Of a stretch of DNA of 62,203 bases, positions 44,983 to 53,222 are shown piece by piece. The position numbers were made by a program, and so were the translations under genes. Within the stretch, counting starts at the first letter, position 1, and the number at the start of each line of letters is the position of its first letter. The notes below the pieces were generated by a model that saw only the letters and a program-made list of their open reading frames with translations, had not been told where the DNA came from and ran no database searches. Origin of the DNA: Guillardia theta CCMP2712 (lineage: Eukaryota > Protista > Cryptophyta); the NCBI RefSeq assembly GCF_000315625.1, contig NW_005434588.1, positions 224,558 through 286,760 on the forward strand, given 5' to 3'.

Positions 44983-46980
44983 TCAGGCTCCAAGGTAATC
45001 TTTTGCCACCTGACGTGCAACAGTCAGCACAGGGACTGAAGCAGTACCAGCACTTCACCTTCTGGGCAAGGTCCGCCATTCTCTTGGAGTATCCCCACTC
45101 GTTGTCGTACCAGGCGTAGATCTTTACCATCTTGCCTTGTACCACCATGGTGCAGGCGGCGTCAACGATGGACGAGCGATCGTCGTTGATGTAGTCAGTC
45201 GAGACCAGCGGGCGTTCCTCGAACCCAAGGATGCCCTACAGACCGTGAGAAATACTCGATCACACCTGGTGCCTCCCATCCTCCTCCTCTCACTCTCCTC
45301 ACTGTCTTCCCACTCTACCTCTGCGCACTTCTCCTCCTCCTCCTCCTCCTCCTCCTCATCTTCCTCCCACCTTGAGGGGCGCAGTCTCGGAGGCCTCCTT
45401 CAGGAGACGATTCACCTCCTCCACCGTCGTATCCCTGGCAACATCGAAGACACAGTCTGCGCCCTGCACGTCACGAGCATGCCACCAGCTAATGTTTCCC
45501 ACCTGTGATGGAGCCGTTGCACAAGGGGACTCTGACTGCCAGCCCGTTGAGCTTCCCCTTCAGCTCGGGGAACACCTGGGCATGGCTTCAGGCCTGGTCC
45601 TCAAGAGCCGAGCCCAGACCTCAGCGATCGCCGTAGCAGAGCCTGTGGAGGTGGGGACAGGTTGACCATGCCTGATCTTCCTCTCCGAAGGTCCTAAGGG
45701 ACCAGGTGAGGAGGATGGCAGCTGAAGAGAGGAGGGAGTGGAGCGAGAAGGAGGAGGAGGAGGAGGAGGAGGGAGGAAGGAGGGGAGAAGGAAGGAGGGA
45801 GGAGGAGGGAGAGGGAGGAGGAGGGAGAGGGGATGCCGGAAGTAGAATGGAATGGAGGGGGGAAATTCAACCTGCTTCTTGCCCGTGTCGCACATATCTA
45901 CCAGGGTTTGGGTCCCGGTGACGTTGTGGACCGTAGTGATCATCCCCTTCTCGATTCCGATCTTCTCGTGGATGACCTGAAGGCCACATCTCACCTCCTC
46001 CCTTCCTCCTCCTCTCACCAGCTCCACAACCTTCACAACAGGAGCAAGGCAGTTGGTAGTGCACGACGCTGCCGTGCCTGGCGGGTAGGGACATGTTCAG
46101 ACAAGGACGGGAGCAGCGGCGGGGGTTACAGATGACATGGTCCTTGGTCAGCTTGTCGTCGTTGACTCCCATCACAACATTGAGGACGGACGGTTCCTTC
46201 ACAGGAGCACTTTGACACTTGACGTCAGCCCTTTTAACCGCCCACTGCCACATCTCCACTTACCTCACCACCACCCGCTTGACCCCGCAGTCGAGGTATG
46301 GCTGCAGGACTTTGGTGCTGAGAAAAGTCCCAGTGCACTCGAGCACGAGCTCGACGCCGAGCTCCTTCCATGGAACACCCTCGATGGTGGGCGATTCCGA
46401 GAAGGTGATCTTGGGTAGGAGGAGGAAAACAGCGAGTCACTCAGATGCCCCCCCCTCCCCCCTCCCCCCTCGCACGCTCCTCCTCCTCGCACGCTCCTCC
46501 TTACCACTTTGCCGTCGACGGTGAAGGACTTGCCATCGGCAGCCTCCCGGCATTCGTGATTCCATCGGCCATGAACAGAGTCGAACTGGAGCATGTAGGC
46601 AGATGTCTTCGCTCCTCCCTTGATCTCGTTGACATGAACCTGCGAACATAAAGCCATGAACGCGCATTTGCAGGAAGAGCTCGTAGAAGGAGAAGAGCAG
46701 AGGAGAGTGCGATGCGTGCAGGACGAAAGAGAAGCATATGAGATAGCTAGCACGATGACGGCAAAGAACGGAGGGGAGAGGATGAAGAGGAGAGCTGTGC
46801 AGCCCCCCCCCAAGAGGATCGATCGAGAAGTTGAGTCTACGACGGTTGGAACACTAACAACATGGCGCCGAGCAGCAGGGGCACAGCAGGACTCACGATC
46901 TCCAGTTCCTTCATGTCCCAGGCTGCCCTCATGGTCAGCCTCCCGATCCTTCCGAAGCCATTGATCCCTACTCGCACCAT
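44983..46980 (-). CDS. gap: Glyceraldehyde-3-phosphate dehydrogenase, ArsJ-associated (bacterial gap3-like) type, no targeting peptide
   Basis: Exons 46980-46897, 46639-46505, 46409-46264, 46209-46130, 46077-46031, 45976-45872, 45693-45620, 45575-45503, 45456-45371, 45235-45059 and 45009-44983. Motifs [67 protein letters not shown] and WYDNEWGYS. One apparent 1-nt deletion at about 45653-45656. Confidence 0.92.
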
Positions 46981-48267
46981 GCTGCCGCGGGACGTCTGTC
47001 GATGTTGGCGGAGGAAGGGGGTCCTGGGGGGAGGCGCTTGAGAACCCCTCAACAGGGTGGGGTACTTTAAAAATGACTTATTATATTAAAACTCACTTAT
47101 TTCCAGATATGACTGTGACGTCGATTTCAGTGACCGTGCCACTATGCGGCCTCCCCGCGGGAGTCGGCGGACCTTCTGGACTCCGGGAGAACGGCCCGGC
47201 CAGCCGGGCTCCGCTACCGGCCCGGCGGGCCGGTCACCTCACTGGGAGTGTGGTGCCGAGGCTCAGCAACCGTCCAAAGCTCTCAGTGCAGGGGCAGCAG
47301 GGCCTCAGTGGCCGCCACAATGAGGCACTACCACTGAGAGCCGGGGTCGGCCCGGCCCGGCAGGATTCCCGGCCAAACGACGGGCCCGGCTGGCGCTTTA
47401 CTGAAAATCAACTAGTGACTTGAAGCATCAAAGGGGCGTAGAGCATGCCGACGAGACGTAGACATAGAATCGATCGAAAAAGAGTCTTTTCATGTCTCGT
47501 TGGTGATGGGATGGGTGGGTAGGGTGGTCTTGTCCGTGATCAATCTAAATGTTTGTACCAGGGGGGGGGGCTGGATGACAGGAGGTAGGGGGTACGATTT
47601 GTACAGGGTGGGGGGGGGTGATAAGCTGACAAAGGACCGGTGGCTGAAGATTTCGAATCGTTCCGGTGGAAGTGTGCGAGGGGTGGTGAGCAAATAGAGG
47701 GGACGCGAAGGGGGTATACATCTAAAGGAAGGTCAGTACCACGTGATGAAGCAGATAGGGGGGTGGGGTGATGAAGGGGAAAGGTAGCAGAGGGATAGGG
47801 GTACTAGAAAAGGGGGTAGGGGTGGGTCGTACAAAGGGATGCAATGAACATCGAAAGGGAAGGAGTCGAGGACACGAGGGGCGGGGATGGGATGGCGAGG
47901 AGGGGAGGGGAGGGGAGGGGAGGGGAGGGGAGGGGAGGGGAGGGGAGGGGAGGGAGAACGAAGGAAGAGGAGGAGTGGAGTGGAGGGGGGGATCGGTGCA
48001 AACAGAGGGAGAGGTAGAGAGGTAGAGAGGTCTGAGACAGGGTTAAACAGGTGCACCAAGACACGGAGTTGAGGAAGGTATGCCACTTGGCAAAGGTTGA
48101 GAGAGGAGCGGGCGATACAGGAAGGGATCATTGTGATGGAATCGGACATGAATGTTTGAGGATTGGGTCTACTCGACAGAGGCATCCAAAGAATCCCATG
48201 GCGCGGGGAGATGGAGATGGAAGTTGGAACTGTGAGACTGATGAAACTTGCTGGCAGATTGACAGCG
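46981..48267. promoter_or_regulatory. Putative bidirectional promoter region shared by the GAPDH and arsJ-like genes
   Basis: About 1.29 kb between divergent start codons, containing a GC/CCGG-rich island at about 47120-47420. Function is inferred from position only. Confidence 0.4.
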
Positions 48268-51200: not shown

Positions 51201-53222
51201 ATGATGATGATGATGATGATGATGATGATGATGATGATGATGATGGATTTTGTCAATCATGAAACACGAATTATCCTAATGGGACCCTTAGAAACGAATC
51301 CTTTGTTGATTCACTCTCAGGCCTCAACGCTGTCTGTTCGGCAAATGTGACATGTGGCGGAGGAACCGAGTGCATTCTGGTGAGAGACTGCAATCGAGGT
51401 CGTCACGATGTGAAACTTTGCCCTTTCCTTCAGAATGGCGATCAAGGTGTCTGCCAGAATGTCAACTATGGTTGTGGAGGGCTGGGGCTGGCAAGGGTGA
51501 CTGTGGGAGCATTTCTGGTAAGAAGGAGAGGATGAGAAGGTTGTCGTGGAGGTCAGAGAGGAGGAAAGAAGAACGAGAAAGTGCGGGAAGACGAGGAGAG
51601 AAACAGGATGGGAGCCAGAGAACGAGGAAGAGGTGGTACTGGAAGTAGACGAGGGAGGAAGGAGGGGAGGCAAGAGGGAAGGAAAGGGGGAAGGGGCACA
51701 GCAGGGTGGAGATGGGGCGGAGGCGAGAGAGGAGAAAAGACGAAAGGAGCAGGGAGGACAGATCTTCTCTTCTCCTGACCCTCCTTCAGGCCATCTACAT
51801 CATCCTCTACGGTCAAATGCAAGCTTACACCCCGCAGCTAGTTCTCCGCCCCCTCAAGCAGTCTCCTCCGAACAAGTGGGTAGAGGTGAGCGCTCGAGAT
51901 AGAGGGAGGAAGGTGATGACTTTGGGTCAGGTGCTGTGGGGCTACATCAACACTGTGCCTCCTCTCATCATGGCGATGATCACTCTGTTCGCTCCTGAGT
52001 TCCAGAATTACGAGTACAAGCCGGTGAGGAGGAGGGGTTCGTGCTGCTGCTGCTGCCGCCGCCGCCGCCATGGTTGTTGTTGATGTTGTTGTTCTTGATC
52101 TCTGCATTTCCGAAGGACTTGACGTGTGGAGCTGACCTTGCAAGTCGTTTCATGACCTTGGGCTGCAGATGTTATCTACGATGATTGTCGGGTTGTTGTC
52201 TTCGCACTGATCTTTGCCATCAACTCGTCCATCCACTCCTACCTGGTGATACACACTCTCTCCCATCCTCTCCTCTCCTCTCCTCTCCTCTCCTCTCCTC
52301 TCCCATGCCTCACCCAGCTCTTTTTCTAGGTGGTGCGCTATGCTGAAGGCAACAAGGTGGCCACTAGCGTTGGCTTCTACTACATGTCCAACGCTGCGGG
52401 AAGGCTCATGGGGACCCTTGTATCGGGAGCTCTCTACTCCTACATCGACCCCAACGACGTGTCCAAGGGTATCGGCGCTTGCTTCGTTGCTGGTGACCCT
52501 CCTCGCCTCCCGTCTCCTCTTGTCTTCCTCCCCTCTCCTCTCATCCTTTCTCCTCCCTCCCCCTCTTCTCCCCTTCCCTCCTCTTCTCTTCCTCTCCACT
52601 TCCTCTCCCCTCTCCTCTTCCATTCCTCTCCTCCTCCCCCTCCTCCTCTCCTCCCTTCCCCGTCCCTCTCTCTCCCACTCTCGTTTCCTCCCATCTCCTC
52701 TCCTCCCCTTCCCTTCGCCTCTCCTCCCCTCCCCTCTTCATGCTATCGTGCTCTCTGTGATGTCCTCCCAGGCGCCATTGCCAGCCTTCTCGCCACCATC
52801 ATCACTTACAAGATCAGAGATGATGCCAACGGGTTGACCTGCGGCAGGTTGGAACTTGCCCTGCCCTTCTTCGCTTCTCTCCGTTTTCTGCCCCTCTCTC
52901 CTTTCCCCTTCATTCCTTTTCTCCTGCTCTTTTCCTCTTTTACCCTCTTGTCTCCTATCTTCTTTCTCCTCTCCTCTGCTCTCCTCTTCATTCCTGTTCT
53001 CCTGCTCCTCTTCTTCTACCGTCTTCTTTTCTTCTTTCTCCTCTGCTCTACTTTCTTGCATCTCATGCTTGCGCTTGTCTGCGGCACCATCCTCACTTCA
53101 GCCCTCCTCTTCTCCTTCTCTCCCTCGCTGCTTCCTCGTTTCTCCTCTCACATCAGTATCGCAGCTGCGTCATCGTCGCTGGAGAGTTTGAAGAATCGGA
53201 TCAGCAGGGAGCGGAGGAATGA
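48268..53222 (+). CDS. arsJ: ArsJ-family organoarsenical efflux MFS transporter with an inserted 8-Cys loop
   Basis: Exons 48268-48634, 49225-49292, 49615-49689, 49753-49780, 49834-49890, 50025-50068, 50117-50189, 50417-50467, 50546-50589, 50635-50687, 50868-50903, 50948-51039, 51321-51517, 51790-51885, 51931-52023, 52169-52245, 52330-52492, 52772-52847 and 53165-53222. ArsJ signatures: TDGSVRMIVLL, FTLYE.AGVATNL, AQMLCGIAKDLTKL, TGWKNSLKGVGYF, ARLFLFASRDLWF, YGQMQ, FAINSSIHSYL, VGFYYMSNAAGRLMGTLVSG. One apparent 1-nt deletion at about 52190. Confidence 0.88.
48658..49078. repeat. 18-bp minisatellite (ATGATGMTCGTTATGACG), about 23 copies, in arsJ intron 1
   Basis: Directly visible, with two unit variants (C or A at position 7). 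Confidence 0.95.
51119..51246. repeat. (GAT)n microsatellite in an arsJ intron
   Basis: Pure gat run of about 42 units. Confidence 0.97.

Follow-up and report, generated by a model that had tools for sequence, protein, structure and literature searches.

Does the nuclear genome of the cryptophyte Guillardia theta CCMP2712 encode a dedicated route for clearing arsenate, As(V), from the cell? The question is raised by two adjoining genes in a 62,203-nucleotide stretch of contig C86 (NW_005434588.1). We refer to the whole stretch as the window. One gene encodes a glyceraldehyde-3-phosphate dehydrogenase (GAPDH) of the class associated with the transporter ArsJ (GAPDH3). The other, head-to-head with it, encodes an ArsJ-like transporter of the major facilitator superfamily (MFS). 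A second copy of the pair is on contig C19. On balance, and by analogy with characterised systems, the pair probably forms a eukaryotic GAPDH3-ArsJ module for arsenate detoxification via arseno-ester export. Its parts are listed below.

46980 to 44983, minus strand: ArsJ-associated GAPDH (GAPDH3 class), 11 exons, 344 amino acids allowing a one-base gap, public model GUITHDRAFT_158520.
GAPDH exons, minus strand, first part: 46980-46897, 46639-46505, 46409-46264, 46209-46130, 46077-46031, 45976-45872.
GAPDH exons, minus strand, second part: 45693-45620, 45575-45503, 45456-45371, 45235-45059, 45009-44983.
48268 to 53222, plus strand: ArsJ-like MFS transporter, 20 exons, 564 amino acids allowing a one-base gap.
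ArsJ exon starts 1-10, plus strand: 48268, 49225, 49615, 49753, 49834, 50025, 50117, 50417, 50546, 50635.
ArsJ exon starts 11-20, plus strand: 50868, 50948, 51321, 51434, 51790, 51931, 52169, 52330, 52772, 53165.
46981 to 48267: spacer between the divergent start codons, 1,287 bp.

In these models, defined by coordinates, all introns of both genes (29/29) have GT-AG boundaries. The original prediction of 11 minus-strand GAPDH exons was borne out, as was the distance of about 1.29 kb between start codons. Conversely, the transporter has 20 exons and not 19, and neither spliced protein is complete as had been claimed, since each gene is one base short as assembled. Of several in-frame ATGs, that at 48268 is the likeliest start of ArsJ, and the protein so defined has a hydrophilic N-terminus of about 85 residues. 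The spacer is a candidate shared promoter region for GAPDH and ArsJ. GC-rich, palindrome-rich intergenic blocks of like appearance occur at 47060-47460, within the spacer, and at 56200-57050; the former has a single weak second match elsewhere in the genome. Two ArsJ introns are repetitive: intron 1 holds an 18-bp tandem array (48658-49077; 23 copies, 97% matches) and intron 12 a perfect trinucleotide run (51119-51245; 42 copies).

The genome contains two ArsJ loci and two GAPDHs of the ArsJ-associated class, and they are neighbours both times. G. theta has roughly 25,000 genes. Taken as one event among that number, adjacency by chance has a probability of about 1e-4. Bacterial contamination was ruled out by the 29 GT-AG introns, the eukaryotic neighbours and the second copy.

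We placed both proteins using family models, with cut-offs of 450 bits for NF033735 (ArsJ-associated GAPDH) and 400 bits for NF033734 (ArsJ). Searches were run exon by exon or via database proteins (P0293, P0425, P0286 and P0154). The window GAPDH (P0293) scored 484.3 bits with NF033735, while the next model, at 463, was under its own cut-off. NF033735 also ranked first for 4/5 GAPDH exons tested. The G. theta GapC locus scored 310 with the same model. In the quick GAPDH trees, L162 and L171 were each entered as one row of exons, and outgroup loci as one row each of BLAST segments, with X between pieces. The window protein fell on the ArsJ-associated side, split from the other GAPDHs of the genome and other bacterial classes (Shimodaira-Hasegawa-like approximate likelihood ratio test, SH-aLRT, 100). 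Together with sequences from Hemiselmis and from the environment, it forms a cryptophyte clade (support 99). Hence, with 484 bits against a cut-off of 450 and a place among gapdh-arsJ enzymes rather than GapC, the class originally assigned was confirmed. Identity as GapC or plastid GAPDH was ruled out by the NF033735 scores (484 versus 310) and the tree.

Residues at the 38 positions that separate the ArsJ-associated class from other GAPDHs sampled are largely kept (26/38 in the window model, 28/38 in the C19 paralogue and 27/38 in a green-algal cluster GAPDH3). Some, such as 185, 204, 236 and 245, are unlike those of bacteria. The window GAPDH carries the catalytic cysteine motif and the histidine motif. 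GAPDH3 is predicted to be cytosolic because it has no N-terminal targeting extension. Three further GAPDH loci in the genome serve core metabolism. Among solved structures, the top sequence matches were generic type I GAPDHs only. Cryptophyte and green-algal GAPDH3s both lie outside the sampled bacterial group (support 80-97). One clade for the two was not rejected (approximately unbiased test, p-AU 0.62), with the constrained tree 5.7 log units better. This leaves room for a single origin of cryptophyte and green-algal GAPDH3 without proving it.

The transporter exons match NF033734 alone among relevant NCBIfam models, and the partial C19 model scores 274.8 bits. Because cryptophyte homologues score 331-345 bits, under 400, we file the window protein as ArsJ-like, a putative member of the eukaryotic ArsJ group without formal NF033734 membership. 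A set of 72 bacterial ArsJs has 15 invariant charged residues; the homologue from Baffinella retains 15/15, and they can be read in the window exons. The Baffinella model is a 12-helix MFS protein (mean predicted local distance difference test, pLDDT, 80.6) for which a fold search returned generic MFS proteins at 11-16% identity; the window transporter should adopt the same fold. Eukaryotic ArsJ homologues are common, occurring in diatoms, diplonemids, green algae, a red alga and the hemichordate Ptychodera flava. In a quick tree, with bacteria picked via their GAPDH, the root placed by us and the window transporter represented by its C19 paralogue and homologues, the sampled non-bacterial sequences lay on one side of a branch from 24 bacterial ArsJs (SH-aLRT 100). 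Cryptophytes adjoined diplonemids and diatoms (96). This agrees with the reported monophyly of eukaryotic arsJ (PMC9812998). Thus, the earlier family call stands on the sole family matched, the tree and the charged core, while the homologues fall short of the formal cut-off.

A further element distinguishes this transporter.

51030 to 51480, plus strand: six-cysteine insertion of about 37 residues, spanning the end of exon 12, exon 13 and the start of exon 14.

The insertion (35-56 residues) is common to cryptophytes, diatoms and diplonemids, and is lacking in bacteria, green algae and the red alga. In the Baffinella model it lies between helices 7 and 8, which would put the loop on the outer face, where the cysteines may form disulfides. 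In the tree, diplonemid ArsJs (P0151 and P0153) are neighbours of those from cryptophytes (support 88), and the cysteine loop is found in both. Diplonemids have a Gap3-type GAPDH. The Ptychodera homologue (L033:10001-11590, P0035) is intronless and located on a 44-Mb chromosome. It passes the NF033734 cut-off (407 versus 400), shows a weak grouping with the ArsJs of green and red algae and is a possible case of transfer into an animal. ArsJ-GAPDH fusions were also considered and rejected. The long homologues P0166 and P0226 carry MFS_1 alone; P0109 matches both ArsJ and GAPDH but is a 193-amino-acid fragment.

Is the pair maintained as a unit? The C19 copy is part of a larger duplication.

44240 to 54260, corresponding to C19:728390-734920: duplicated block holding GAPDH3 and ArsJ, flanked on one side by the 3' end of a C2-domain gene and on the other by a small cysteine-rich gene.
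41417 to 44660, plus strand: multi-C2-domain gene with three near-identical C2 repeat units, convergent with GAPDH3.
53450 to 54240, minus strand: small spliced gene with a cysteine-pair motif, in the duplicated block and degenerate on C19.

The cysteine-pair motif had no significant Pfam match but is suggestive of FLZ-type zinc fingers. On C19 the pair has the same head-to-head layout, and intron positions are identical wherever both copies are assembled. ArsJ exons 1-2 fall within an assembly gap there, and the spacer also runs into an assembly gap. The public models are GUITHDRAFT_162259 for GAPDH and GUITHDRAFT_44341, a partial MFS model. Between window and C19 copies, synonymous divergence (dS) is about 1.0-1.1. 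The ratio of nonsynonymous to synonymous divergence (dN/dS) is 0.024 for GAPDH (316 codons) and 0.054 for ArsJ (366 codons). Both genes are under strong purifying selection. The C19 flanks have decayed: the C2-domain gene is a 3' remnant, and the small right-hand gene has a stop and a lost cysteine. The pair is intact. In a transcript contig of a close relative (L034), GAPDH3 is tail-to-tail with the orthologue of the window C2-domain gene. Hence, the window is probably the ancestral site of the pair.

Both window genes are frameshifted as assembled, and each frameshift is a single gap in the alignment to the C19 paralogue.

45653 to 45656, minus strand: one-base deficit in a homopolymer run of GAPDH exon 7 (74 versus 75 nucleotides in the C19 paralogue).
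52190 to 52192, plus strand: one-base deficit in a short run of ArsJ exon 17 (77 versus 78 nucleotides in the C19 paralogue).

GUITHDRAFT_158520 bypasses the GAPDH gap via a shifted acceptor and so loses six residues, including a conserved arginine. Conversely, the G. theta UniRef protein P0426, taken to be transcript-derived, has window-specific residues either side of the gap and reads through in frame like all relatives. Both its ends are aberrant, making it good but imperfect evidence. Because P0426 reads through, the site is a homopolymer and dN/dS against the paralogue is low, the GAPDH gap is probably an assembly error. The ArsJ gap is likely one too, given its homopolymer position and the strong purifying selection. 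Were both gaps real, the window copy would be a recently inactivated duplicate, leaving the C19 pair to work alone. The two frameshifts and the existence of a second copy speak for this. Against it, both gaps are at homopolymer runs, dN/dS is 0.02-0.05, every splice site is intact, P0426 reads through despite its ends, and the intact ancestral neighbour sits beside the window copy. We regard inactivation as very improbable.

Sequencing runs bear on expression. In nine runs that we guessed to be RNA (four studies), 0.31-0.35 of the 31-letter words of 44900-47100 were present. Words wholly within GAPDH coding exons make up 0.326 of that region. The C19 exons are 81-88% identical, and few shared 31-letter words are expected from that copy. 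Since the fraction observed matches the exon-only prediction, this word-content comparison, made for the GAPDH region only, fits a window GAPDH copy that is spliced and expressed.

What would such a pair do? Arsenate enters cells through phosphate transporters. Once inside, it would replace phosphate in the reaction of the dedicated cytosolic GAPDH on glyceraldehyde-3-phosphate, yielding 1-arseno-3-phosphoglycerate. The Vibrio homologue VarG prefers arsenate and forms this product (PMC9601151). The ArsJ-like protein would then clear the cytosol of As(V). The simplest form of export is the ester, which would hydrolyse outside, as in the Pseudomonas model summarised in PMC7826186. Reduction to arsenite would not be needed, judging by Pseudomonas and Chlamydomonas, and in Chlamydomonas mutation of arsJ or of pgk3 makes cells sensitive to arsenate (PMC7826186). 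We infer both localisation and co-regulation by a shared promoter.

Several observations weigh against this arsenate-module interpretation. Full-length cryptophyte ArsJ homologues score 344.8 and 331.4 bits, under the cut-off of 400, and carry the eukaryote-specific cysteine loop. No GAPDH was found within about 10 kb of ArsJ in Nitzschia inconspicua, a pedinophyte, Ptychodera and three environmental contigs. Finally, in Vibrio cholerae the species exported by ArsJ appears to be free As(V) (PMC9601151). The same study points out that the Pseudomonas result relied on rabbit GAPDH, without direct detection of the ester; the exported species is thus disputed. The claim that As(V) is removed without reduction is probable, given homologous genes tested in bacteria and Chlamydomonas; the form in which it leaves is contested.

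The Vibrio data suggest an uncoupled scheme in which the GAPDH3 ester is a transient intracellular sink, hydrolysed inside, and ArsJ exports free As(V). There, the ester was found only inside cells and the arsJ phenotype was far stronger than that of varG (PMC9601151). In addition, eukaryotic ArsJ often lacks a neighbouring GAPDH3, in Cyanidiales too (PMC9812998). However, the scheme uses a phosphatase, VarH, reported to be restricted in the main to Vibrionaceae; the duplicated block has no recognisable phosphatase or PGK, and the pair stayed together on duplication. Free As(V) export of this kind is the less favoured course, at perhaps one chance in four.

Alternatively, the pair may have taken on a new role in phosphate or triose-phosphate metabolism, for instance phosphoglycerate export or organelle shuttling, with arsenic incidental. 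Two strongly conserved copies, the wide range of eukaryotic ArsJ, even to a hemichordate, and the GAPDH positions that differ from bacteria (185, 204, 236 and 245 among them) would all accommodate this. It is nevertheless unlikely: Chlamydomonas arsJ mutants are arsenate-sensitive (PMC7826186), the three other GAPDH loci serve core metabolism, and the charged core residues are those of bacterial ArsJ. Export of the arseno-ester therefore remains our preferred account.

How did the two genes come together? In bacterial loci with this GAPDH class, arsJ is directly downstream on the same strand in 78/81, as the adjacency originally described would have it; two of the three others are on very short contigs. 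Linkage among eukaryotes is patchy. The genes are adjacent in both G. theta copies and in green algae. In Edaphochlamys the order is ArsJ, PGK, GAPDH3, with PGK and GAPDH3 divergent. Conversely, besides the unlinked ArsJ genes above, an intron-rich GAPDH3 of the cryptophyte clade from a marine metagenome had no ArsJ within 9-10 kb either side, using the same search that readily recovers the window ArsJ. In a metagenome scan, no contig carried a eukaryotic GAPDH3-ArsJ pair. Neither the window nor 25 kb of C19 gave a PGK match, and none of the four PGK loci in the genome is on C86 or C19. Two of these (C2:185313-186719 and C5:1173621-1175069) score below the others and are similar to the PGK of the Edaphochlamys cluster in its N-terminal part. 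They are possibly PGK-like paralogues, unlinked to the pair. A search of the genome for ACR3, which can overlook genes with very small exons, gave no match. As far as it reaches, this would fit the pattern of PMC7826186, where the neighbourhood and an ACR3/ArsH/ArsC cluster are alternatives.

The original prediction held that a bacterial operon was acquired horizontally, gained introns and stayed linked. Ultimate bacterial affinity and the gain of introns are supported. The idea that an operon entered this lineage and stayed linked finds no support: the genes are head-to-head here but co-directional in 78/81 bacterial loci and differently arranged in a green alga, the sampled eukaryotic ArsJs form one broad group, and linkage is patchy. 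Probably both genes reached eukaryotes from bacteria at an early date, in a single event in the likely case of ArsJ. Their later spread would have been by descent or by transfer between eukaryotes. The head-to-head layout would then be a product of rearrangement or re-clustering within eukaryotes rather than a copied operon layout. More tentatively, and with rather less than even odds, the genes were unlinked after the old acquisition and re-paired independently in the Guillardia line under a bidirectional arsenate- or phosphate-responsive promoter. The pair would then have been selected as a unit through the segmental duplication, its flanks decaying. If true, one metabolic cluster was built convergently in two eukaryotic supergroups, here in a form that lacks PGK and has an ArsJ subtype with a disulfide loop, shared with diatoms and diplonemids.

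Two other features of the window lie apart from the pair.

57499 to 59331, plus strand: long open reading frame with a protein kinase domain and EF-hand-like motifs, resembling a calcium-dependent protein kinase.
6019 to 8526, minus strand: open reading frame of 835 amino acids with a weak HET match (E 0.0036), below the cut-off.

For the public annotation, our models correct a mis-spliced GAPDH and a partial, unnamed ArsJ on C19. They also extend to cryptophytes an arsenate-resistance neighbourhood tested in green algae. The minimal two-gene, PGK-free version offers a handle on whether ArsJ exports arseno-ester or free arsenate. Given the broad eukaryotic range of ArsJ, export of As(V) without reduction may be important to plankton of low-phosphate waters.

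How does the pair compare with known systems? The nearest are the green-algal ArsJ-GAPDH3(-PGK3/PGK4) neighbourhoods, such as Chlamydomonas Cre07.g354150, g354200 and g354250 (Foflonker and Blaby-Haas, PMC7826186). The earlier mention of similar green-algal neighbourhoods was thus correct. Those authors propose that the two genes were acquired as a unit from bacteria; PGK3/PGK4 is a neighbour in most, not all, of their genomes. As in green algae, the same two families are adjacent and intron-rich in a nuclear genome, and ArsJ is of the same eukaryotic group. Unlike theirs, the G. theta pair has no adjoining PGK, is directly head-to-head and is duplicated, and its ArsJ has the six-cysteine loop.

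The bacterial gapdh-arsJ operon pair was described in Pseudomonas aeruginosa DK2 (Chen et al. 2016, as cited in PMC7826186). The G. theta GAPDH is over the NF033735 cut-off, with 56-62% identity to bacterial ArsJ-linked GAPDHs, and the invariant charged ArsJ residues are kept. Cryptophyte and bacterial ArsJ share about 33-37% identity over full length, under the NF033734 cut-off. In contrast to G. theta, the bacterial genes are co-directional and intronless and, in one inspected case, behind an ArsR-like gene. The Vibrio cholerae var operon (arsR-varG-varH-arsJ, PMC9601151) likewise combines ArsJ with an arsenate-preferring GAPDH, a preference assumed here by analogy, and has no arsenite step. 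However, the duplicated block has no recognisable VarH-like phosphatase or ArsR, and free-arsenate export is proposed for Vibrio. The Pteris vittata GAPC1-OCT4 pathway (as described in PMC7826186) has the same proposed chemistry in a eukaryote. It is convergent, using a plant GapC and an OCT transporter instead of GAPDH3 and ArsJ.

No mention of Guillardia or cryptophytes was found in the two key papers or in the literature searched, with subscription papers outside that coverage. We conclude that the concept is already known from green algae and that the G. theta pair is a real further example. New here are the lineage, the direct head-to-head, PGK-free layout, retention of the unit after duplication and the cysteine-loop subtype.

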